64,000 nt of DNA from positions 3,630,880-3,694,879 of the forward strand of contig CM074810.1 in NCBI GenBank assembly GCA_037447605.1. Direction: 5' to 3'. Under the pieces are notes generated by a model. That model made no database searches. It worked only from the letters and a program-made list of their open reading frames with translations, and was not told the DNA's origin. Shown piece after piece: positions 28,609-53,495 of the stretch (positions are counted from its first letter, which is position 1; each line of letters begins with the position of its first letter). Origin of the DNA: Zygnema circumcarinatum SAG 698-1b (taxonomy: Eukaryota; Plantae; Zygnematophyceae). The position numbers were made by a program, and so were the translations under genes.

Positions 28609-29973
28609 NNNNNNNNNNGGGGTCGTGAGGGAGAGGGTGGGGAGAGGGTGGGGAGAGGGGGGGAGAGTTGGGGGGGGGAAGGGCGGAAGGGAGAGGGGAG
28701 GGAGTGGGGGGGAAGGGAGAGGGAGAGGGAGGCGGGGACAGGGGGGGGAGAGTGGGGGGGGGGAAGGGCGGAAGGGAGAGGGGAGGGAGTGGGGAGGGAG
28801 GGAGAGGAGAGGGAAAGGGAGATGGGGAGAGGGGGGGGAGAGTTGGGGGAGGGAGAGGGCGGAAGGGAGAGGGGAGGGAGATGGAGGTGGGGAGAGGGGG
28901 GCGAGTGGGGGGGAAGGGAGAGGGAGAGGGAGGGGGGGAAGAAAGGAGGGAGGGGGAGGGAGGGAGAGAGAAACAGATTGGGAGAGAGGGGGAAGGTGGA
29001 CGAAAAGGGAGCGGGGAGGGAGAGAGTGAAAGAAGAAGAGGGGTTTACGGGAGTGGGGGGGGGGAATGGAGAGTGAGGGGGAATGAAATGAAGACTTGGG
29101 AGGGGAGGGGAGAGATAGAGAGGCCGGAGGAGAGGTGGAGGGAGAGAGAGACATGGAGAGAGAAGGAGAGGTAGATATGGAAGGTGGGCGAGGAGAGGGA
29201 GAGGGGGGGGGAAGAGAGACACCGGCGAGGAGGAGAGGGAGAACGAAATAAAGGATTCAGATGAGAGGAAAAGGAAGAGGGAAAGAAGAGAGCGAGGGGG
29301 AGAAAGGAATAGAGACACAAAGTGGAGAGCGAACGAGAGAAGAGGCACAAAGAGAGAGAGTAAGAGAGGAGAGGGAGAAAGAGGGAGAGCAAGAGAGAGA
29401 GAGCGAGAGAGAGAGAGAGAGAGATGTATGCGATGTGCGTAGTCTATAAATACAAATGGGGTGCAAATGGGGTATAAGGAAGGTCTCCCACCTTCAATAT
29501 CATGGCAACCTCCAACGGACTTAAGGGACAAAACTGGTCTCCATACGCCTTTAATGTTTTCTCGTCATATTTACAACCTAATGAGACAGAACCCGGTAAA
29601 GAGTTACACCCCATTTGTACCCAATTTGGAAAAAGAAATGGAAAAGGTCGAAATACGTCGTCATGCATGTTGTAAAGGTTATGTTTGGACGAGAGTGTTT
29701 TTATTAGTTATCATGAGTGTGTGTGCATGTGAGAGTGGCAGGATGGGAGGGAGAGGAGCGGATGAAGAAGGTTTGCTTGTGAAAGGGAGACAGAGAAGGG
29801 AAGTTGCGAGAGAGGCTCAGATGCGGGAGAGAGGGGGCGGAGAGAGAGAAGGCGAGAGACGAAGAGAATAGTGGTAGAGAGCACGACCGGAGGAATGGGG
29901 GAGGAACGAAAGCTAGTGAGAGGTGGCAAGAGAGAGAGAAAGAGATAGAGGAAGAGCGAAGGAGAGAGGGGGG

Positions 29974-30017
<44 letters not shown>

Positions 30018-30024
30018 CATAGAG

Positions 30025-30055
<31 letters not shown>

Positions 30056-32269
30056 CTGACCGCTATGGACGAGCCAGTCGGGCTCGAATCGCATGTGCAG
30101 GGTCACATAGGGCCCATTCCGTCGTAATTTTTGAATTGCTTGTCTTCCCAGGCTGCTCTCCCCATGCAGTTCAAAAAATCGTTTAAACAAAAACTACAAA
30201 TAAATGGCCATGTACATTGAACTTAACAGACTAAAAATTTGAAGCAAAATCGAGTGGTTTTGAGGAATCAATAGTGGAACTTTCACCTTTTTCCTCTCCT
30301 CCCTCTCTAGCTTGATTTTTTTGGCTGCTTTCTCCCTTTATGTCACCTCCCAGTGCAGCTCTCTCTCCTCTCTCTCTCCCCCCTTAGCAGACATTCTTTC
30401 TCTCTCACTCTCCTTGCTCCATTGTCTCCTGCGAACTCTGCTATTTGCCCTTCTATCTTTCGCTCTCATTCTCGCTCACTTTCTCTTTCATCCTCGCCAT
30501 CTCCCTCTCTCTGCACCTACTGTCTCTCTCCAAATCCCCCTCCCTCTATGGGATACGAGTTGCTGAGCTCACTTTTGAATGTTGGGGAGAAACCGGAGAG
30601 CGTGAAAGTTTGCTCGGCATCGTAACCGCTAATAACAAAAGCAGAGAGAAAATGAGAGAGAGAGAGAGAGAGTGTCAGTGAGAGGAGTGAAATGGCAGAA
30701 AAACATGAGAGGGGAGAAGCAGTGAGGGAGAAGAGAGCGACGGAGAGCAAGGGATAGAGAGCGAAAGAGGAATAAAGGGGGATGAAAAGAAAAGAAATCT
30801 CAAAAATAACACACCAAATTTAAAGGAAAGTAGTCTGCTTTAATTTTTGTAATCAACATAAAGCATAAAACCAAAAAACAAAACCCAGAAACCCTAAACC
30901 CTGGAGGTTTTACAGCGCTTACTTGGAGGTCCAAAGGGAGATTTTCGACCAATTGCACGTGCCATCTTAATACGCAGAGAGAGCCGTCTTGAAGTAAAAG
31001 AGGGAGAATTTGTTGAGCTATTGCTTCTATGGTCAAATAATTCGCAACTTCGTAGATAATGGAGGAATCCACACATTTGGGTTCCACATTGGGAGGAAGA
31101 GTTCTGAAATGACAATTTTCTGATTCANNNNNNNNNNGTTGGGGGAGGGAGAGGGCGGAAGGGAGAGGGGAGGGAGATGGAGGTGGGGAGAGGGGGGCGA
31201 GTGGGGGGGAAGGGAGAGGGAGAGGGAGGGGGGGAAGAAAGGAGGGAGGGGGAGGGAGGGAGAGAGAAACAGATTGGGAGAGAGGGGGAAGGTGGACGAA
31301 AAGGGAGCGGGGAGGGAGAGAGTGAAAGAAGAAGAGGGGTTTACGGGAGTGGGGGGGGGGAATGGAGAGTGAGGGGGAATGAAATGAAGACTTGGGAGGG
31401 GAGGGGAGAGATAGAGAGGCCGGAGGAGAGGTGGAGGGAGAGAGAGACATGGAGAGAGAAGGAGAGGTAGATATGGAAGGTGGGCGAGGAGAGGGAGAGG
31501 GGGGGGGAAGAGAGACACCGGCGAGGAGGAGAGGGAGAACGAAATAAAGGATTCAGATGAGAGGAAAAGGAAGAGGGAAAGAAGAGAGCGAGGGGGAGAA
31601 AGGAATAGAGACACAAAGTGGAGAGCGAACGAGAGAAGAGGCACAAAGAGAGAGAGTAAGAGAGGAGAGGGAGAAAGAGGGAGAGCAAGAGAGAGAGAGC
31701 GAGAGAGAGAGAGAGAGAGATGTATGCGATGTGCGTAGTCTATAAATACAAATGGGGTGCAAATGGGGTATAAGGAAGGTCTCCCACCTTCAATATCATG
31801 GCAACCTCCAACGGACTTAAGGGACAAAACTGGTCTCCATACGCCTTTAATGTTTTCTCGTCATATTTACAACCTAATGAGACAGAACCCGGTAAAGAGT
31901 TACACCCCATTTGTACCCAATTTGGAAAAAGAAATGGAAAAGGTCGAAATACGTCGTCATGCATGTTGTAAAGGTTATGTTTGGACGAGAGTGTTTTTAT
32001 TAGTTATCATGAGTGTGTGTGCATGTGAGAGTGGCAGGATGGGAGGGAGAGGAGCGGATGAAGAAGGTTTGCTTGTGAAAGGGAGACAGAGAAGGGAAGT
32101 TGCGAGAGAGGCTCAGATGCGGGAGAGAGGGGGCGGAGAGAGAGAAGGCGAGAGACGAAGAGAATAGTGGTAGAGAGCACGACCGGAGGAATGGGGGAGG
32201 AACGAAAGCTAGTGAGAGGTGGCAAGAGAGAGAGAAAGAGATAGAGGAAGAGCGAAGGAGAGAGGGGGG

Positions 32270-32313
<44 letters not shown>

Positions 32314-32320
32314 CATAGAG

Positions 32321-32351
<31 letters not shown>

Positions 32352-35291
32352 CTGACCGCTATGGACGAGCCAGTCGGGCTCGAATCGCATGTGCAGGGTC
32401 ACATAGGGCCCATTCCGTCGTAATTTTTGAATTGCTTGTCTTCCCAGGCTGCTCTCCCCATGCAGTTCAAAAAATCGTTTAAACAAAAACTACAAATAAA
32501 TGGCCATGTACATTGAACTTAACAGACTAAAAATTTGAAGCAAAATCGAGTGGTTTTGAGGAATCAATAGTGGAACTTTCACCTTTTTCCTCTCCTCCCT
32601 CTCTAGCTTGATTTTTTTGGCTGCTTTCTCCCTTTATGTCACCTCCCAGTGCAGCTCTCTCTCCTCTCTCTCTCCCCCCTTAGCAGACATTCTTTCTCTC
32701 TCACTCTCCTTGCTCCATTGTCTCCTGCGAACTCTGCTATTTGCCCTTCTATCTTTCGCTCTCATTCTCGCTCACTTTCTCTTTCATCCTCGCCATCTCC
32801 CTCTCTCTGCACCTACTGTCTCTCTCCAAATCCCCCTCCCTCTATGGGATACGAGTTGCTGAGCTCACTTTTGAATGTTGGGGAGAAACCGGAGAGCGTG
32901 AAAGTTTGCTCGGCATCGTAACCGCTAATAACAAAAGCAGAGAGAAAATGAGAGAGAGAGAGAGAGAGTGTCAGTGAGAGGAGTGAAATGGCAGAAAAAC
33001 ATGAGAGGGGAGAAGCAGTGAGGGAGAAGAGAGCGACGGAGAGCAAGGGATAGAGAGCGAAAGAGGAATAAAGGGGGATGAAAAGAAAAGAAATCTCAAA
33101 AATAACACACCAAATTTAAAGGAAAGTAGTCTGCTTTAATTTTTGTAATCAACATAAAGCATAAAACCAAAAAACAAAACCCAGAAACCCTAAACCCTGG
33201 AGGTTTTACAGCGCTTACTTGGAGGTCCAAAGGGAGATTTTCGACCAATTGCACGTGCCATCTTAATACGCAGAGAGAGCCGTCTTGAAGTAAAAGAGGG
33301 AGAATTTGTTGAGCTATTGCTTCTATGGTCAAATAATTCGCAACTTCGTAGATAATGGAGGAATCCACACATTTGGGTTCCACATTGGGAGGAAGAGTTC
33401 TGAAATGACAATTTTCTGATTCACAATATGAGCGGTATAGAAAGAAAGGGAGAAGAGAGAAGAGAGAGAGGGGAGGGAGAAGGGAGGGGGGAGGGGTGGG
33501 AGGGGGAGTTACACAGGGAGAAGGGAGTGAGGGAGGGAGTGACTGAAGGAATTGAGGTGTAGATAGAGTTGGGAGAGAAGATGAGAGAGAGAGAGAGTGA
33601 GAGAGCGAAGAGAGAGAGAGGAAGGTGTGGAGGATAGGGCGTAGGTGCCGAACAGCACATGCATTTGGGACTTGTGTTGGATGTCACCTCACAATCTCCA
33701 CATCTCCTTTGAGTGATGTGATGAACCAGTCAACATCGAACACGTCGTCCATCTTCCTGAACGCAATCCAACCAAAAAAATTCAGAGTATTAACAGCCTG
33801 AAACTCGAAATCAACCCTCAAAACCCTACAAATCTCTCACTCTTCCTCCCTCTCTGTCTCCCCCTTCAACCTCTCTCGCTCCCCTCTCATCTCTCATCTC
33901 ATTTCAGCTCATCGCTTTCTCTCTCTCTTGCTTTTTCTCCCGCTCTCGCAAAAGAGAGAGTGAGAGAGACTCCCATTTGTGATGTATGCTCACTAACGCA
34001 ACATTGCAACGTTTCACAACCGTTTCGTGACAATGTTTTGGCCTTCTGAAGCTCCCAAAGAGCAATGTAAGTCTCCTAGCCTTCTTCCAGTGTCTCTTTC
34101 CCATTGCTTACCCTCTCCCATGATCCCCCCCCATTCCATTCTCTCCATCATGTTGTACAACGGAATGCATGCACAGTTGTTGGTGCATGCATGCATGCAT
34201 GCGCCGTCGGCCGGTCGGTCGGGCGGTGCCCCCATACATACATACATACATACATGGCCACTTTCCACACTTCGTGCTCCTCGAGGGCGGGCACGACCAG
34301 CGTCGCGTTGAGGAGCCGCGCGAGCACGACCGCGTTGGCGGCGCCCTTTCGCTGTTGGTTGAACCCGCCGCGGAGCGTAACTGTCATGTAGCCGTTGCTG
34401 CGAGCCGGAACTGCCAACGGAACGGAACGGAACATCACGGAACGGTAAACGGTGGGTCTGAGAAAATGTGCCATGCAGGAGGACTACTACTGGAAGGAGG
34501 CCGCTGAACCCCCCAGAACAAGTGCGTGCTAACACACAGGGGGGGTTAAGGCTCAGGGTTTAAGGTTTAGGGTTTAGGATATAGGGTTTCGGGTTTAGGG
34601 TTTAGGTTTTAAGGTTTAGGGTTTAAGGTTTAGGGTTTAGGGCTTAAGGTTTAAGGTTTAGGGTGTGAGATATAGGGTTTAAGGTTTAGGGTTTAGGTTT
34701 TAAGGTTTAGGGTTTAGGTTTTAAAGTTTAGGGTTTAGGTTTTAAGGTTTAGGGTTTAAGGTTAAGGGTTTAGGGCTTAAGGTTTAGGGTTTAGGGTGTG
34801 AGACATAGGGTTTAGGGTTGAGGTTTTAAGGTTTAGGGTTTAAGGTTTAGGGTTTAGGTTTTAGGGTTTAACTGTAGGGTGTCAGATTTTGGGTTTAAGG
34901 TTCAAGGTTTAGGGTTTCGGGTTTAGGGTTTAAGGTTTAGGGTTTAGGGTTTAAGGTTTAGGGTTTAAGGTTGAGGGTTGAGGGTTTAGGGTTTAGGGTT
35001 TAGGGTTTAGGGTTGACATATGGCGAGCTGCGCGGGCTTACTCGCAATGTCGGTGTCGCGCCGCACATCGCTGCAGGGCACGACCTCGCTCGCGTTCGGC
35101 CGCGGGAGCAGGAGGCCGGGGCCGTACGGCTCCACGGACTGCCACGTGGCGCGACACGGGGAGGATCGCGCAGGGAAGAAGATGGCGGCCATGGCAGCGA
35201 TGGCGAGGAGGCCGAGGAGGGGGACGAGCACCAGCCTCCTCCTCACCATGGCCATGGCCATGGCTGCCGCCAAGGCTGTAGCTCGGGCCAT
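27348..35291 (-). CDS. Plant O-fucosyltransferase-family (GT106 / DUF246) type II membrane glycosyltransferase
   Basis: Exons 35291-35042, 34410-34254, 33756-33688, 33399-33219, 32924-32869, 32448-32357, 31873-31788, an unresolved exon ending at about 28230, 28158-28074 and 27545-27348. Motifs: N-terminal TM helix, SNGYM...GGFNQQR...AVVLARLLNATLVVP, DVFDVDWFI.SL, RLRCRANFHALRF, PYVTLHMRFE, CPLSPLEV, FCYPMQCMC. An internal block is duplicated by the assembly. Confidence 0.88.
28842..33423. repeat. Identical tandem block 28842-31127 / 31138-33423 across a 10-N gap; probable assembly overlap
   Basis: Offset 2296, apparently identical including microsatellite lengths. N gap at 31128-31137. Confidence 0.9.
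34543..35013. repeat. About 470 bp interstitial telomere-like array (TTTAGGG mixed with TTTAAGG and TTTTAAGG) in intron 1 of the GT106 gene
   Basis: Directly visible. Confidence 0.95.
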
Positions 35292-36733
35292 TGAAGGAGG
35301 GGCTGAGACTTCCAAACTTCCAAGTTAGGGTTTTTAGGGTTTCGGGCGCAGAATTTTAGGGTTGCGATTTGTGGTTTTTCCCTTGAGAGTGACGTCAGCA
35401 AAAGCGCGACCAATCAGGTGCCAACGACCATGCTGTATATTTGTTGTACAGGCGTCGAGTCCGCAAGGACGGCCATTTTTGTCGTTTTGGTTAAAAATAT
35501 CGTTACACCGCCGTCGTATCGGCTGTGACCGGCAAAAAATGCCGTCGCCGGCCGTCTGCCGCCGGGACCGTCACCGCAGTTTCGCCGGCCGACTGAACTG
35601 TCCAGATTATAGATCCGTATGTATCAAACGCGTGTATTAATCCGTTCCCTACCCTTCCCTCCCCTTTCTCCTCCCCGCCAACCCGCTTCCCTCCCCTCAT
35701 CCATTTCCTTCTCCTTCGTCATGCCTCTTCGTCGCTCCTCTCGTTCCCCTTCCCCTTCCCACCCCCTTGCCTTGTCATCTGCTGTTGTTCTTCCCCCTCC
35801 TGTCCGTTCTTCCCCTCTTCCTTCTTCCCCTCTTGCTGCTCGCCCCAGACCTCTNNNNNNNNNNGTAGTTTTCCGCTTCTAGCTTCGTTTTATTGTGTTT
35901 CGGTCCTTTGTGACCAGTCCTTCGTGGTTCCACATTTTGCCTTTATCCATATACATTTGATGGCCTCGCCATCGCGAGTTCAATGAAAGTTTGCTGTGTG
36001 TATTAATACACTGTATAATACATGCGTATTATACAACATTTTAAAAATACAGTGTATTTTTAATGTATTTAACGTATTTTTTTTATTTTCGTGGTTAGTT
36101 GAACAAAATCTGATTATAATATTGAAATTCCAGCACTTGCCTAGTCACGTCACTTGCCAAACACTCAACACGTGTGACTTGGTCCGTACGTGTTCGTACA
36201 CCTATTCCGTACATAATTTCCGTACGGATCTATGTTCCGATTGTACGGCTGTTAACAGTTGCGTAAAGGTATTATACAGTGTATAATACAGTATTAATAC
36301 TGTATTATACATTGCATCAAACCTCAAACTGTATAATACGGATCTATAGTCCAGATCCACTATCAAATTTGCCAGCGTCGGTCAGATCCGATACGCCGTC
36401 GATATGGCGATATGCATAAATTTTGCAACTAACTGAGGCCACATTCGGATTTGCTTCTAAAAGTAGAGACTGTTTGCGAATTTGAGAAATTCAAGGGAAG
36501 TAATTACATGTGAACGAGCAAAGCAAATTGACCTACCAAGTGACCTATAAGAGACCTAAAAAATCCCAACTTCTGCACACTATTGTAGCCCTATAAACAT
36601 ACTCCAAAAAGTGATGTTGTTGGGTCAGACATGCTTTCATGTCATGACCAACTTCTCGCTTCTATGCTCTCTCTCCAACATTGAAACTGAACCCTCCCTT
36701 CCTCCCCCCCTGATTTGGTTCCAAAAGCAATGC

Positions 36734-38816
36734 TCAATTTCGCCAGAACTTTCTTTTCATGGTTTCCGGAAACCCAAGATGACAGAGTCTCTCGGCGGTG
36801 AATCCTCCCTTCTGTATGGGAACGGTTTGAAGGAAGGCTTGCAAGTGAGAGACGCAGGAGGGTCTCTCTCTCTCTCGCTCTCTCTCAAGGCTGAGGTAGG
36901 CTTCAAACAGCCTCTCTCCCACCGCCCCCCTAAAGAGCTCTTTCCAATTGGAAGGCCACGAGGTGAGGCCCAACAAGTTGCAATACTCCTATTTCACACC
37001 CGTCAAAAGCAACACCAATAAAAACAAAATTACACAACCGAAAGTAAAGGACCAAAAAAGAGATAAACGAAGCAAATGAAACGAAGTCATGTGAAGCTAG
37101 CGAATCATGGAGTGCCATCGCACGCGCCAACGGCCTCACCGTCATGCCGAACAGTTCCATGGGCACCTCTCGGAGGAGAGTTTTGTTGGTCTCCCTCTCG
37201 CAGGGCCAACAGTACGCGCCGTCACGCGCAGACCGCGACCCAAGAGGGGCCACTCGGCCGTCCATGAGACTGCGGGGGAAGGACACAAAGCTTGAGGGGG
37301 AGGGGTAAGGGGGAGNNNNNNNNNNGGGGAGGGGGAGGGGGAGGGAGAGAGAGAAAGAAAGAGAGAAAGAAAGAGAGATTCTAACCTCTTGGGCGGGAAA
37401 TCCCAGGTACGTTTTGTCAGCACACAGAAGGGAAAGTGCGGCCTGCGCAGATTCGGCAGGATGTCCGCATTCGCCAGATCTGCCTAAAAAACCCCCAACG
37501 GTCCAGAAATGAAGGCCAGAACGAGAACAAGTGCGCGGGAGAGAGAAAGAGAGTGAGAGAGAGAGAGAGCAGAAACTTGCAATAAACGAATCATTCTGCT
37601 CTTTCCCTCCTCTTCTTTCTTCCTCCGAGTTCCCAATCTATGAATGCTCCAAACTTCAGGTCACAGTTTCAGAAAATATGCTTGTATGTTTTCTTCCGAT
37701 CGTTGTCAGTTCTCAGGTTCTTTCATAGTTTAAACTTTCAAAATCGTACCAGAAACTTTTCTTCCGAAGTGAGAGCCCGCATTCCGCGCAGGTAGAGCCC
37801 CGGAATGGAGGACATTCCTGCAAGCGATGCAAGGCTCCATTCCCTTCCGCCCAAAGTGAAGCGGTCGTTTATCCCCCACCAGTCACTCCCTGCAAAGCCA
37901 CCCAAGTTTTCAGCCACAAACCAGCTCCTATTTGACAGTTTTATGTTGAAAAAGTATTCCCCCCCACCTCCCCTCCCCAACAACCAACCTGGCGGTATGC
38001 AGAAGTGCTGCATGATGTGGCCTGAAACAGGGTGCAAACCCTAAATCCTAAACCCTGAGTTACTTTACAGCAAGTTACTTTACAGTTCCTTCGCGCAACC
38101 CTAATTCACCCTAAGCCTGTCTAACATGGTGAAAAATTTCCACCTGGGGGAATGTAGAAGTTCTCCAGGCTGTAATTTTCGATGGGCTCCGGCGGGCCCG
38201 ACCAGACGGTGTCCGGCCTCGTCCTCAGCACCCACTCGTATTTAAAGCCCTTCAAAATTTCGTACTCTAAAATAATTTCTTTACAGGCCTCCAAAAGCTT
38301 GATATAGTGCAGCAGACCCTGCCGGCCCTTGGGAGATGCATGTTCAGCAATCACCTGTTCTATGACATCGTTTAACGGAACGTCCAACTGCTCCGCTATA
38401 TGCACTGCCACGACATTGCTGCCGTTGAGGAAGCGCACTTTCCATGCGGTACTGTCTAACGGAGTAACGACAAATACGTCCAAATTTTTGTACGCATGGA
38501 ACAGGTGGGCCTGGATGCTCGGGGCGGTGAGTTCGAATTCTCGGAGACCGCCAGCGAGACATAGGGCTAAGCGAGGGTGCTTAACCGGGGAATGCGGGAG
38601 GGAGGAGCGGGAGAGAGGGAGAGGGAGAGGGAGAGGGAGGAGGACGAGGAGGACAAGGAAAGAGAGGAGGAGGAAGAGGCGGGCGAGAGAGGACTTTAGC
38701 GGCCGTAGTGACTTAAAGATTCTGCGGGGTTTAGGATATTTGAAGTTTGGGGTTTCTATGAGATGCTCAACTTCAGGGAGAGGGTGGGAGGGAGAGGGAG
38801 AGGGAGAGGGAGCCAT
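36734..38816 (-). CDS. At3g26950-like (DUF7796-type) uncharacterised type II membrane protein with glycosyltransferase-like motifs, about 431 aa
   Basis: Exons 38816-38144, 37889-37750, 37483-37386, 37269-37140, 36988-36734, phase-consistent. Motifs: TM helix, RLALCLAGGLREFELTAPSI, SPKGRQGLLHY, YEWVLRTRPD, IPPGSDWWGINDRF, PFCVLTKRTWDFPP, GAYCWPC. Family assignment is from memory. Confidence 0.85.
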
Positions 38817-40087: not shown

Positions 40088-40227
40088 ATGTACGCATGTG
40101 CCCCTGCAAGGAGGCGCATTGTGGAGATGCTCGCATGCTTCCTCGCTGTACTAGAGCTCATACAAGACAAGCTCAACTTCGCCATTGTTCGGTTTTCCGT
40201 CAACAAGGAGGGTTTGCCAAAGGTCCA
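40088..40227 (-). pseudogene. Fragment of the 42173-43306 gene (codons about 37-83) with an in-frame TAG, copy 1
   Basis: 140 bp aligned by eye to 43058-43197 with 9 mismatches. TAT (Tyr) has become TAG. Confidence 0.9.
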
Positions 40228-40867: not shown

Positions 40868-41007
40868 ATGTACGCATGTGCCCCTGCAAGGAGGCGCATT
40901 GTGGAGATGCTCGCATGCTTCCTCGCTGTACTAGAGCTCATACAAGACAAGCTCAACTTCGCCATTGTTCGGTTTTCCGTCAACAAGGAGGGTTTGCCAA
41001 AGGTCCA
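40868..41007 (-). pseudogene. Fragment of the 42173-43306 gene, copy 2
   Basis: Same 140-bp fragment with the same premature stop. Confidence 0.9.
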
Positions 41008-42172
41008 CCCTAATCCTGACCCTATTCTTGCCTAAAACCCTAACCCGTTGACCCTAACCCGTTGACCCTAACCCGTTGACCCTAACCCGAGAAAAGCCAA
41101 AATTTTTAATTTCTCTTTTCTCAACCTGTTCGCTTTACAGTATTGTTCAATCTTCAAGTTCCAAAACATTGGATTCACTTGTTCCAAAGTTCAACTAAAA
41201 CTTATGTTGTTTGCGATTAGAACCTTCAAACAGTGAAGTAAAAAATGTTCTATTTCTCAACCTAAATTGGTTGTAGTAGGGTATTCGACTGTTTCAATTT
41301 CCAATTCAAATTCATTCAATTGTCTAAAGAAATCGACTATTAGGGGAGGTCAGACATTGACCATAGCCGAATCAATTCAGTAAGCCTGTTGGGCGAATTA
41401 AGCATTGGCTGGGTACAGGTAGGGATTCCCCATCATGTATTTTCACCTACATTTGGCAAAATTAGACAGAGAATATTGTTTTGGCAAATATAAGTGGTAC
41501 TCAATCCAGCAAAGCGGAATTATGTTAGAGTTCATGTATGTTGCGTTTACCATAATTATGGTGTTGGCGTATCATTTTCTGGCCGAATGAGCGAGTTCAA
41601 CAAGAAAGTGCTCATCACCATGCGAACCAACAAAGGCACATACATGAACATGGACAGCATGAACCACACCAACAACACCAACACAGCCCTTTGTCGCCAT
41701 GCGCAACGCTGCGGTCGCCAATTACGTCACCCAACATTGTTCAGAGTGCCCCCACATCCCCATCTCTAGCGGCCCAACATGACTCTCATGGACACCATCA
41801 TCGTGCCCACAACCGCCATCTGCCCACCTCTAACCCGCGAATAAAATTTTCCCGCCGTGTGGGCCAATAGCGTCCTTCCACGTGGACATAGGATTCCGCT
41901 GCGCCTCTAGCGGACCCAATCCAATAGAATCACCATATTGTCTCGACGACCTCTGGGAGGCCAAAGAAATCGACAGCATTCCATACAATGCGAAATGTTA
42001 AGATCGCTTAATTCGAAAAACCGCCATTGACCTTCTTTAACAAAGATGCAAGGTCAAGTCCCTTATTTAACCATTGCCCTTGCCGTCCAGGATCCCATAA
42101 ATTACTTTATTGGAGTGAGTCCGGGAGGGTTTAGGGTTTAGGGTTCAGAATCAGACCATGCATCGACAAACT

Positions 42173-43306
42173 TCAAAGCTTTCCCCCTAAACTGTGGTAC
42201 AACTTCAACGACTCCCCCCCTATTCTATGCTTGAATTCTTTCAAAATTCTAGTGGTCTCATTATCTCCAAATCGAAATAACCAGTTCTCTCTCTCCTTCA
42301 CCGGATTTTGCTCCTCCATGGAACCCGTTTTACCATCTATCCACATCATTTTCGTGCCTGAATGGTACACCCAAATATTCACCACCCTCTCCATAATAAA
42401 GCACCAGCACAGCCGGTTGTTATATAAGCTTTTCTCGTTATTTAAGGGACATCTGTCCACGTCTTCATGCAGCTTCCACAACGCTTCAAGAGTCACAAAG
42501 AACGCACGCGCGAATACCATAAACTCCCGAAATAGGTCCACATGCATGATCCAATATGAGCAATACGAGTACTCGCGCTGGGCGAGGGGCATTGGAGGGT
42601 TCCAAGCTTCATACAAATGGCTCACATTGGTACCCTCTTGCAACCTTCCTTGCGTCCCAAAGAGCGCATGAAAAGCAGCCGAGTACACGTGAGAGCAAGT
42701 CACGTGCCAATAATCACAAGTTTGATAGACTTCCTTTATCCCAAAAGTAGACCAAAAGTAGAAAACTCGCGTGTCGAGGGTCCCTCCCTCTCCCTCTCCC
42801 TCTCCCTCCCCCCTCATATGAGAAATCAAACTCTGTATCGCCGCCGGCTTCAAGTCAATCCCCTTCTGCTCCGCCCTCCAGCTTTGAAACCCTAAATATG
42901 GAACCCTTCCATGGATCCGCTTCAGGTTCGAGTCCAGTGTGAACATAGCGCCATACTCGCACAGCAGACCTTGATAGGTGAGATCTCTGAGAGGAGGAAG
43001 GAGCTTTGTGGCATCCACATCCACATCTAAATACCATGACTTCCGTACCATGTTGGGATGTACGCATATGCCCCTGTAAGGCGGCTCATTGTGGAGATGC
43101 TCCCATGCTTCCTCGCTGTAATAGAGCTCATACAAGACAAGCTGAACTTCGCCATTTTTCGGTTTTCCGTCAACAAGAAGGGTTTGCCAAAGGTCCAAGT
43201 CCTCGAGCAGGTCGGTTTGTCGTATTAGAAGAAGGGCCGAAACAAGGAGGATCAATGTAACGGATCCGATGAGGCGTGAGCGCCGCCTTTCGGATGGCTT
43301 GCGCAT
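42173..43306 (-). CDS. Intronless type II membrane protein, 377 aa, DUF4422-like putative glycosyltransferase
   Basis: Single ORF starting with ATG. Short basic cytosolic tail (MRKPSERRRSR), TM helix (LIGSVTLILLVSALLLI), then motifs CEYGAMF, YLGFQSWR, YCSYWIMHVDLFREF and FIMERVVNIW. These parallel the DUF4422 pattern E.....W / YIG..HYRR / N.FIM.K.LF..Y / GF..ERL...W. Confidence 0.7.
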   Translation of the reverse strand: MRKPSERRRSRLIGSVTLILLVSALLLIRQTDLLEDLDLWQTLLVDGKPKNGEVQLVLYELYYSEEAWEHLHNEPPYRGICVHPNMVRKSWYLDVDVDATKLLPPLRDLTYQGLLCEYGAMFTLDSNLKRIHGRVPYLGFQSWRAEQKGIDLKPAAIQSLISHMRGEGEGEGEGGTLDTRVFYFWSTFGIKEVYQTCDYWHVTCSHVYSAAFHALFGTQGRLQEGTNVSHLYEAWNPPMPLAQREYSYCSYWIMHVDLFREFMVFARAFFVTLEALWKLHEDVDRCPLNNEKSLYNNRLCWCFIMERVVNIWVYHSGTKMMWIDGKTGSMEEQNPVKERENWLFRFGDNETTRILKEFKHRIGGESLKLYHSLGGKL

Positions 43307-43316
43307 GGCGAGGCGG

Positions 43317-43650
43317 CTAAAACCCTAAAACCTAATCCTAACCCTAATCCTAACCCTAACCCTAACCCTGATCCTGCACTCTGAAACTGAACCTAAACCC
43401 TAAAACTAATAAACCTCAAACCTAACCTTTAACCCTAAGATTAACGCTAAGGTCTGAACCTGCCACCAAAACCCAAATCTTAATTCTAAATCTAATTCTC
43501 AAACTTAAACCTAACCCTAATTTTGAAACCTAATAACGAACCGCAATGCCGATCCTAAATCTAACCGTAACCCTTACCCTTAAACCCAGATGCTGAACCC
43601 TATTCTAGCCTAAAACCCTCACCTAACCCTACCCCTAACCTTAACTCCAA
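43317..43650. repeat. Degenerate (CCCTAA)-type telomere-like tract directly upstream of the DUF4422-like gene
   Basis: CCTAACCCTAATCCTAACCCTAACCCTAAC and variants. Confidence 0.8.
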
Positions 43651-43673
43651 TTTCAATCTGAATCCTACAGCAG

Positions 43674-43834
43674 TAGGGGGTGTCAGACTTAAAAAATTTC
43701 AGTACGCGTGTTCGTAAGTTTGACATCAGAACGAGTACTCCAGTATAATCCCGATCCTCCTGCGGCGGAGTACTTTCGTAACCTTTGTTTTCGTAACGCT
43801 TTTCGTAAGATTTTGTTAAGTCTGACACCCCCTA
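43674..43834. mobile_element. MITE with TIR TAGGGGGTGTCAGACTTAA (assembly copy at 45133-45293)
   Basis: Perfect 19-bp terminal inverted repeat, about 160 bp long. No convincing 8-bp TSD; the outer TA could be a Tc1/mariner-type TSD or the start of a hAT-type TIR. Confidence 0.85.
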
Positions 43835-44111
43835 GTAGCCCTACATTGTCCGTACATGTTGTCAGTAGGGATGTACATTCGAACGCAATGTCGTGTTTTA
43901 GAATTCCAATCAAAAATTCGAAAATTCTAAAATTCTAAAAGTCAGGCCGTTTTATAAAACACTTTTAGACTTGCCGAGAATCGTACGGCTGTAGTATCGT
44001 ACGGAAAATATGTACGGTCAGCGCGAGAGAAGTTCAAGCTTGCGGGTGTTCAATTGCAATGGTCGTACGGTAATTCTAAAAGTGTTCTAAAACTCTGAAA
44101 CTTGTAGATAT

Positions 44112-44250
44112 TAGGGCTTGTCAGACTTAACAAAATTTGACGAAAAGGGAAAGTTACGGAAGTACTCCTCTGAAGGGTGATCGCTATATGACCGGAGTAC
44201 TCGTTCTGGTTTAAAACATACTGACGTTGTGTTAAGTCTGACAACCCCTA
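44112..44250. mobile_element. Second MITE of the same family in opposite orientation (assembly copy at 45571-45709)
   Basis: TIR TAGGGCTTGTCAGACTTAACA / TGTTAAGTCTGACAACCCCTA. Internal CAGAACGAGTACTCC and GAGTACTT motifs are shared with the 43674 MITE. Confidence 0.85.
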
Positions 44251-45324
44251 TTAGAGCGTTCTAATTCTGAAAGGGTAGTGATATTTCCACCCCTTTTTTG
44301 GATCCAAACACCCCTTCCCGGCCGGGCAGATTGCAAAAGGGATTAAAAACGGAAAATGCTTTTTTCACACCTTTTTGGAATCGATACCCACCTCCTTTCG
44401 TCGGCTGATTTTATTTTTGGTAACCAAGGAAAATGATACCCCGTCACTGCATTTTGAATACTGTATCCCGCCTCCCTGAATTTTTTTTTTGAGGGGAAGA
44501 AATATCTGCCAGCCCAAATCCGCTCGAAGTGGAAGATCCGTCAGCCACGAGATCGTTCGCGGATGTCCGTCCTTCACACGTGTGTGTCAATCGCAGCTGT
44601 CGATTCCCTCGCAGATCGCACCATTGCAGGTCACCGTTCGATCTGCAGCCGGGCTCGATCTTAGCGAATGGAAAGNNNNNNNNNNAGAAGAAGGGCCGAA
44701 ACAAGGAGGATCAATGTAACGGATCCGATGAGGCGTGAGCGCCGCCTTTCGGATGGCTTGCGCATGGCGAGGCGGCTAAAACCCTAAAACCTAATCCTAA
44801 CCCTAATCCTAACCCTAACCCTAACCCTGATCCTGCACTCTGAAACTGAACCTAAACCCTAAAACTAATAAACCTCAAACCTAACCTTTAACCCTAAGAT
44901 TAACGCTAAGGTCTGAACCTGCCACCAAAACCCAAATCTTAATTCTAAATCTAATTCTCAAACTTAAACCTAACCCTAATTTTGAAACCTAATAACGAAC
45001 CGCAATGCCGATCCTAAATCTAACCGTAACCCTTACCCTTAAACCCAGATGCTGAACCCTATTCTAGCCTAAAACCCTCACCTAACCCTACCCCTAACCT
45101 TAACTCCAATTTCAATCTGAATCCTACAGCAGTAGGGGGTGTCAGACTTAAAAAATTTCAGTACGCGTGTTCGTAAGTTTGACATCAGAACGAGTACTCC
45201 AGTATAATCCCGATCCTCCTGCGGCGGAGTACTTTCGTAACCTTTGTTTTCGTAACGCTTTTCGTAAGATTTTGTTAAGTCTGACACCCCCTAGTAGCCC
45301 TACATTGTCCGTACATGTTGTCAG

Positions 45325-46512
45325 TAGGGATGTACATTCGAACGCAATGTCGTGTTTTAGAATTCCAATCAAAAATTCGAAAATTCTAAAATTCTAAAAG
45401 TCAGGCCGTTTTATAAAACACTTTTAGACTTGCCGAGAATCGTACGGCTGTAGTATCGTACGGAAAATATGTACGGTCAGCGCGAGAGAAGTTCAAGCTT
45501 GCGGGTGTTCAATTGCAATGGTCGTACGGTAATTCTAAAAGTGTTCTAAAACTCTGAAACTTGTAGATATTAGGGCTTGTCAGACTTAACAAAATTTGAC
45601 GAAAAGGGAAAGTTACGGAAGTACTCCTCTGAAGGGTGATCGCTATATGACCGGAGTACTCGTTCTGGTTTAAAACATACTGACGTTGTGTTAAGTCTGA
45701 CAACCCCTATTAGAGCGTTCTAATTCTGAAAGGGTAGTGATATTTCCACCCCTTTTTTGGATCCAAACACCCCTTCCCGGCCGGGCAGATTGCAAAAGGG
45801 ATTAAAAACGGAAAATGCTTTTTTCACACCTTTTTGGAATCGATACCCACCTCCTTTCGTCGGCTGATTTTATTTTTGGTAACCAAGGAAAATGATACCC
45901 CGTCACTGCATTTTGAATACTGTATCCCGCCTCCCTGAATTTTTTTTTTGAGGGGAAGAAATATCTGCCAGCCCAAATCCGCTCGAAGTGGAAGATCCGT
46001 CAGCCACGAGATCGTTCGCGGATGTCCGTCCTTCACACGTGTGTGTCAATCGCAGCTGTCGATTCCCTCGCAGATCGCACCATTGCAGGTCACCGTTCGA
46101 TCTGCAGCCGGGCTCGATCTTAGCGAANNNNNNNNNNGGATACGTGGGCACGTGCCATTCGCTGTGACCGAGCCCGGCTGCAGATCAAATAGCGATCTGC
46201 CGTGTTGCGATCTGCGAGGGAATCGACGGCTGCGATTGACCGCACGCGTGGAAAAAAATTCAGGTAGGCGGGATATTCAAAATGAGGTGACGGGTTATCA
46301 TTTTCCTTGTTTCGCAAAAATAAAATCTGCCGATGGAGGGTCGGTATCGATTCCAAAAAGGTGTGAAAAAAGTATTTTCCGTTTTTAATCCATTTTGAAA
46401 TCTGCCCGGCCGGGAAGGAGTGTTTGGATCCAAAAAAGGGGTGGAAATATCACTACCCTTCTGAAATCTAAAACCCTAAAAAGTCGCTTGTACGGACAAA
46501 TGTACATCCCTG
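45325..46512. mobile_element. Non-autonomous hAT-like element hosting two nested insertions
   Basis: Ends TAGGGATGTACA and TGTACATCCCTG resemble the Ac TIR (T/C)AGGGATG. Flanks GTTGTCAG / ATTGCCAG match 6 of 8, consistent with a degenerate 8-bp TSD. GTACGG subterminal repeats are present. Confidence 0.7.
45732..46458. mobile_element. Long-TIR (over 300 bp) Mutator-like/foldback element with perfect 8-bp TSD TTCTGAAA; centre lies in an N gap
   Basis: 45732-46127 and 46138-46458 are inverted homologues starting GGGTAGTGATATTTCCACCCC. TTCTGAAA flanks at 45724-45731 and 46459-46466. Confidence 0.85.

Positions 46513-48721: not shown

Positions 48722-53495
<4,774 letters not shown>

Follow-up and report, generated by a model that had tools for sequence, protein, structure and literature searches.

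DUF4422 domains (Pfam PF14393) are known biochemically from one protein. The N-terminal half of WbbM from Klebsiella pneumoniae O2a (PDB 6U4B) is a DUF4422 domain and the founding GT111 UDP-galactofuranose transferase; WbbM is the only characterised DUF4422/GT111 member and uses UDP-Galf (PMC12269835). This domain is fused to a second glycosyltransferase domain, of family GT8 (PMC12269835), which occupies residues 267-502 (PMC13756512). Full-text literature on DUF4422 and GT111 contained nothing on plants or algae among the matches listed. On the Desulfobaculum bizertense plasmid NZ_CP090010.1, a true DUF4422 gene lies directly after glf, which encodes UDP-galactopyranose mutase (UGM), and such adjacency fits the Galf-transferase role of bacterial GT111. 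This gene served as our DUF4422 reference; it was obtained through a non-significant plasmid tblastn match (E 5), which was not used as evidence. Its protein matches WbbM at 3.8e-30 and, used as a seed, recruited 4624 PF14393 proteins.

A second group of relevance occurs in land plants: proteins about 1040 aa long that bear the names 'Glycosyl transferase family 1 domain-containing' or 'UDP-glycosyltransferase superfamily', such as Cucumis XP_004138684.1 and Ceratopteris KAH7299398.1. Pfam annotates only a GT4 domain in them, and their C-terminal ~370 residues carry no Pfam annotation. Arabidopsis AT5G04480, BURSTING POLLEN (BUP), is presumably a member of this GT4-fusion family. In the literature AT5G04480 goes under two names, 'UDP-glycosyltransferase superfamily protein' and BUP, the latter being described as a glycosyltransferase of the Golgi that the pollen germination plaque requires (PMC6022596, PMC6446297, PMC7733995).

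Here we describe an open reading frame (ORF) of the alga Zygnema circumcarinatum SAG 698-1b. It lies in a 64,000-nucleotide stretch of contig CM074810.1 (assembly GCA_037447605.1, positions 3,630,880 to 3,694,879 of the forward strand), which is referred to below as the window and in whose coordinates all positions are given. The explanation that best accounts for our data, and which we regard as probable, is that the ORF represents an intact gene in the nucleus of a streptophyte alga, that it encodes a type II GT-A protein, that it belongs to an unannotated Viridiplantae family remotely related to DUF4422/GT111, and that its product acts as a transferase in the Golgi lumen.

The coding sequence and its surroundings

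The ORF listing gave an ATG-initiated, intronless ORF of 377 aa plus stop on the minus strand at 42173-43306. Alignment showed it to be colinear with its homologues over the full length, with no sign of a missing exon. The features located in and around it were as follows.

42173..43306, minus strand: complete, intronless coding sequence of a GT111-like type II membrane protein (ORF list; colinear with homologues end to end)
43277..43306, minus strand: basic tail, predicted to be cytosolic, residues 1-10, MRKPSERRRS (direct reading of the sequence)
43220..43276, minus strand: hydrophobic segment, predicted signal-anchor/transmembrane (TM) helix, about residues 11-29 (hydropathy, AF2)
42326..43147, minus strand: putative luminal GT-A-fold catalytic domain, residues 54-327 (superposed on the WbbM GT111 domain; hhalign against a DUF4422 profile)
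43013..43027, minus strand: DVDVD, residues 94-98, candidate DxD-like metal/nucleotide-sugar site
42956..42958, minus strand: codon of E117 (in LCEYGA), aligned with the invariant E of DUF4422 CELT
42875..42877, minus strand: codon of R144 (in FQSWR), aligned with the invariant HYRR of DUF4422
42785..42808, minus strand: (GAGGGA)4 microsatellite encoding GEGEGEGE from residue 167, a variable surface loop (sequence, tandem-repeat scan)
42389..42391, minus strand: codon of E306 (in MERVVNIW), aligned with the invariant E of DUF4422 ERLLDVW
42176..42325, minus strand: C-terminal helical extension, residues 328-377, family-specific, absent from DUF4422 and conserved in close relatives
42106..42111, minus strand: AATAAA, 62 nt after the stop, possible poly(A) signal
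43317..43645, no strand assigned: degenerate telomere-like (AACCCT/AAACCCT)n array of about 330 bp, reaching to 11 nt upstream of the ATG

The Kyte-Doolittle profile of the protein reached a maximum of 2.2 (19-residue window) from residue 10, after the tail MRKPSERRRSR, and the AF2 model placed a helix at residues 7-45. A short N-terminal tail, a single signal-anchor helix and a luminal domain, which together make up the topology of Golgi type II proteins, were thus all found in the sequence and the AF2 model. Of the eight cysteines of the protein several are conserved, and there are two N-glycosylation sequons; both features would fit a luminal, secretory-pathway protein. The first-pass annotation, made from the sequence alone, had reported an intronless 377-aa ORF with a eukaryotic Golgi-type anchor and an in-frame (GAGGGA)n tract encoding GEGEGEGE, all of which we recovered. 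The tract falls in a low-confidence loop of the AF2 model (pLDDT <50 at residues 169-175), and this region varies in length among homologues.

Two genes on the same strand were identified next to the ORF, namely a DUF7796 gene at 37741-38816 (E 3.4e-40) and an O-FucT/PF10250 gene at about 29700-35300. As the annotation had stated of the surrounding genes, both are split into several exons by repeat-rich introns. The three together form a run of consecutive same-strand Golgi-type glycosyltransferase-like genes. No glf/UGM neighbour was identified among the ORFs at 26-56 kb of the window, whereas the bacterial example adjoins glf. The GC content of the ORF was 0.49 and its GC3 0.57, as against GC3 of 0.53-0.68 in four neighbouring exons, a small sample.

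The gene was present in contigs from six runs of the same organism, belonging to three studies; we guess these runs to be RNA. For three of the six, contigs were aligned to the locus; they covered the gene without differences, and the microsatellite and the telomere-like repeat were the only points at which they broke. One run's contig ends at 42078, about 30 nt beyond the AATAAA, and this hints at a transcript end. The earlier claim that the gene is integrated rather than a contaminant was thereby upheld by the host-type microsatellite, by GC3 lying within the range of its neighbours and by read contigs from three studies that cover the gene.

The assembly around the 5' end deserves mention. 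The block 43227-44668, which includes the first 80 nt of the coding sequence, is repeated exactly at 44686-46127 (1442 nt), and the copies end at 10-N gaps (44676-44685 and 46128-46137). Redundancy from scaffolding seems a likelier cause than true duplication of the DNA. The duplicate does not call the gene into question, because independent contigs bridge position 43227 (42819-43320). The same duplicate pattern was seen near 29444-31000 and 31740-33300, with the same ORFs appearing two times in the ORF list. A 140-nt piece of the coding sequence (43058-43197, about codons 37-83) recurs with 94% identity at 40088-40227 and 40868-41007, in two units of a 780-bp tandem repeat downstream. Telomere-like sequence also occurs as (AGGGTTT)x2.9 at 42126-42145, 28 nt after the stop, and as a related degenerate array at 34673-35011. 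An ORF fragment on the plus strand at 49543-49650, which we take to resemble the N-terminus of malic enzyme, has a GC3 of 0.94, very high compared with the glycosyltransferase genes.

Fold of the protein and its probable remote kinship to DUF4422

Scans of the ORF protein with Pfam and NCBIfam returned no family, the sole row being a chance Interferon match (E 0.15), and the Pfam DUF4422 model PF14393, whose gathering threshold is 25 bits, did not match it even at E 10. Four divergent members of the family gave sub-threshold Pfam DUF4422 matches in the C-terminal third, in the matching region, the best scoring 22.0 and 18.6 bits. When the family profile was searched against PDB sequences, WbbM was not found and only chance RGS17 matches were obtained. 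When the ESM Atlas was searched by features, DUF4422 made up 23 of the 30 closest clusters (score 0.92, 197/256 features shared).

An AlphaFold model was built from ten homologues (mean pLDDT 80, pTM 0.80). Foldseek against the PDB gave only weak GT-A rows, with WbbM at rank 19 (E 0.057). The match became clear in an exhaustive comparison with the PDB by VIA-align, which placed WbbM 6u4b_A first, with Z 15.2 and an rmsd of 3.2 Å over 211 residues, and the next chain scored 9.9. Residues 54-327 of the model superposed on residues 7-264 of 6u4b_A, and the model thus has the fold of the WbbM N-terminal domain. Since the GT8 domain sits at 267-502, the structural match is to the GT111 half of WbbM. 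This result agrees with the GT-A fold and DUF4422 similarity anticipated in the first-pass annotation. Generic Golgi type II GT-A enzymes (GT8, GT31, GT2 etc.) share the topology and the Rossmann-like core, many of them with Z 8-10, but score well below the GT111 match, and none of their Pfam models matches the ORF protein. DUF4422 clusters were also among the Atlas fold rows. Structural matches in BFVD included a phage DUF4422 protein, and the viral matches were all distant and DUF4422-like.

To compare profiles, 43 of the 4624 PF14393 proteins were aligned as a true-DUF4422 profile. Alignment of the family with this profile by hhalign gave a probability of 44.8% (P 2.2e-4) over 190 colinear columns, and alignment of the family with a single DUF4422 sequence gave 33%. 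The profile alignment paired LCEYGA with CELT, FQSWR with HYRR, a Y/F-x-IM strand with its counterpart and MERVVNIW with ERLLDVW. E117, R144 and E306 fell on E55, R77/R78 and E211, which are invariant in the DUF4422 alignment, and all three are retained in algae and, for the most part, in land plants. The DUF4422 motif DDTGDNIS had no confident counterpart in the family, and hhalign left the DVD motif unaligned to it. Four DUF4422-type motifs had been noted in order in the protein from its sequence, and the colinear hhalign columns speak for them, though Pfam DUF4422 gave no match.

Pfam and the family HMM miss the link, structure comparison shows it, and hhalign points to it at a probability of 44.8%; we therefore speak of remote homology and not of PF14393 membership. 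We regard the ORF protein as a remote homologue of DUF4422/GT111 with a Golgi-type anchor. It shares with WbbM the GT-A-variant fold, the motif order and the three conserved charged residues, at an identity of only ~13%. It differs from WbbM in that it comes from a eukaryote and carries a type II anchor at the N-terminus, a C-terminal extension of ~50 residues and several conserved cysteines.

A family of the green lineage and the origin of the gene

A word-based search recovered 13 relatives, 31-47% identical, whose sources were in every case transcriptomes of eukaryotes or metagenome contigs; the closest were eukaryotic, at ~40% identity to the ORF protein. An exhaustive profile search of 1.84 billion representatives yielded only 156 proteins. 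The labelled ones were all Viridiplantae, namely Cucumis, Citrullus and Benincasa, the fern Ceratopteris, Pyramimonas parkeae and Cymbomonas tetramitiformis. The family is thus green wherever it is labelled, but the majority of the close relatives were recovered from transcriptomes or metagenomes that bear no label, and a wholly green range is therefore not proven by these sequences.

The ~1040-aa land-plant proteins belong here through their C-terminal ~300 residues, which are homologous to the ORF protein (profile E 8.5e-58, ~30% identity). With the C-terminal 367 residues of a cucurbit protein as query, the domain was found in 759 land-plant proteins, most of them of ~1040 aa; it lies at the C-terminus, behind GT4, and is 70-76% identical among angiosperms. 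The modelled cucurbit C-terminal domain (pLDDT 83) was aligned by VIA-align to WbbM 7-263 with Z 16.1, the next chain scoring 9.6. Because this domain folds like WbbM GT111, the land-plant proteins would be two-GT-domain proteins according to the model. A Streptophyta cluster of GT1-domain proteins was row 1 of the Atlas fold search with the model of the ORF protein (TM 0.72 over 317 residues).

The green family, like WbbM, tends to be fused to a second glycosyltransferase domain. GT8 was found in 10 and GT4 in 15 of 60 members scanned, and a sulfotransferase fusion also occurred. The GT4 fusion was present in all land plants sampled, GT8 and sulfotransferase fusions in other green or environmental eukaryotes, and the stand-alone form in algae. 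The ORF protein lacks GT4 (PF00534/PF13692) and has less than 40% of the length of the land-plant protein. In a maximum-likelihood tree it fell in a clade with five unlabelled members (support 95/91), and the GT4-fusion clade of fern and cucurbit proteins was separate (support 100/99). The ORF is so a paralogue, not an orthologue, of the land-plant GT4-fusion gene, because it lies in a different, well-supported clade. The gene is best seen as a resident member of an unannotated green-lineage family, a family-level eukaryotic offshoot of GT111-like GT-A enzymes.

The first-pass annotation had recognised no land-plant family with this set of motifs and had proposed possible horizontal transfer of a bacterial-type enzyme. 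Neither view could be maintained, given that the domain ends 759 land-plant proteins and is present in a fern, cucurbits and two prasinophytes, and that no bacterial or viral relative was found. Among 185,579 prokaryotic species genomes, scanned by pattern and tblastn with a narrower family alignment, 16 pattern matches arose and none was confirmed; the same approach to IMG/VR viral sequences gave 33 pattern matches, again none confirmed, and tblastn against phages gave only chance matches.

Recent transfer would mean that the alga or its close ancestors acquired a DUF4422 gene from a bacterium, phage or giant virus and that the anchor was gained later. The gene is indeed intronless among intron-rich neighbours, its nearest characterised structural relative is bacterial, and DUF4422-like folds occur in phages and in algal giant viruses. 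Against this, neither the profile search nor the pattern scans nor phage tblastn turned up a sequence relative in prokaryotes or viruses. The closest sequences come from eukaryotes, the domain occurs in land plants as well as in a fern and prasinophytes, and in the tree the gene nests among eukaryotic members (95/91). Its GC3 is host-like, and homologues elsewhere have canonical introns. Neither relatives in a distant donor lineage nor a composition unlike that of host genes was found. We reject recent transfer because of the broad homologues across Viridiplantae, and consider it highly improbable. The ORF is, as judged from these comparisons of sequences, an old resident of the green lineage.

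The intronless state of the gene is not diagnostic, because other homologues are intronless too while some carry introns. In homologues from the ENA assembly ERZ25067493, an environmental eukaryote, a single canonical GT-AG intron in phase 2 follows the CD(E) motif (the exons of these spliced homologues were handled as separate pieces), and in Cymbomonas the gene takes up more sequence than the CDS accounts for. In one other organism, two paralogues each consist of a single ORF, on genomic contigs 8-9 kb long. The comparison with the ERZ25067493 homologues and the longer-than-CDS Cymbomonas gene would allow the ORF to be a retrogene, i.e. a processed, reverse-transcribed copy of an intron-containing paralogue that is still functional, and both the repeats around the locus and the 140-nt CDS fragment in the nearby tandem repeat agree with such an event. 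No poly(A) remnant or target-site duplication was found after the 3' end, no parent copy is known, and the two intronless paralogues elsewhere suggest that the intronless state may be old. We therefore think a retrogene unlikely. ERZ25067493 accounted for at least two of seven ENA-sourced first-exon matches, beside Copia and Gypsy retrotransposon genes, which suggests that the family has expanded in that organism.

A different matter is the ultimate source of the family. It could descend from a DUF4422/GT111 gene that a bacterium, the plastid ancestor or a giant virus contributed prior to the diversification of Viridiplantae; such a history bears on origin alone and does not conflict with the explanation that we prefer. 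DUF4422 is abundant in bacteria and phages (4624 matches) as compared to a small eukaryotic family (156 representatives), and the fusion of DUF4422 with GT8 recurs both in bacteria (Atlas row 7) and in the green family. On the other hand, the two families have diverged too far for a tree to be rooted or for the HMM to link them, the searches yielded no sequences intermediate between them, and descent from an older GT-A ancestor would look identical. An ancient transfer is thus possible, though we lean somewhat against it.

Predicted activity and candidate residues

For the resident green gene that we favour, the basic tail would be cytosolic, followed by the single TM helix and a flexible stem, with the GT-A-fold domain in the Golgi lumen. 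By analogy with GT-A enzymes and GT111, the luminal domain would bind a nucleotide sugar, and the sugar would be moved onto a wall polysaccharide or a glycoprotein glycan. Both the Golgi location and catalytic activity are predictions. The candidate functional residues are E117, R144 and E306, shared with DUF4422, and the DxD-like Asp cluster D96/D98.

The donor sugar may be a furanose, e.g. UDP-L-Araf or UDP-Galf. Land plants make UDP-L-arabinofuranose, a five-carbon structural analogue of UDP-Galf, yet to our knowledge they have no UDP-galactopyranose mutase; because they keep the domain all the same, an arabinofuranosyl donor is reasonable but speculative. A bolder proposal, to which we give little credence, is that the family represents a missing class of Golgi arabinofuranosyl or other furanosyl transferases, with the GT4+GT111-like land-plant proteins working as WbbM-style two-site polymerases for a repeating wall glycan.

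The protein could alternatively be GT-A-like and non-catalytic, serving as a pseudoenzyme, lectin or scaffold to anchor or regulate some other glycosyltransferase. It has no canonical, confidently aligned DxD, and plant Golgi glycosyltransferase families do have anchoring paralogues, e.g. GAUT5/6/7 for GAUT1 (PMC7533613). E117, R144 and E306 are nevertheless retained at invariant DUF4422 positions, and the degree of identity of the domain among angiosperms fits a constrained active site. A non-catalytic role therefore appears improbable to us, and a Golgi-lumen transferase remains the reading that we prefer.

With these results, a conserved, unannotated plant domain gains a GT111-like fold assignment and candidate catalytic residues. 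In the alga the domain comes as a small, intronless, single-domain protein, which makes it the most convenient version for expression and assay. Should it prove active, it would establish a further family of plant glycosyltransferases, and a class of wall-synthesis genes so far known by phenotype only could receive a biochemical role.

At the candidate metal site, alignment of the closest homologues showed D96 to be invariant and D98 nearly so, and land plants have DD-V-[DNE] at this position. The DNA encoding DVDVD is itself a 6-nt tandem repeat, (CATCCA)x2.7 on the plus strand (43012-43027 by TRF), and just before DVDVD the protein has a 3-residue insertion relative to all homologues.
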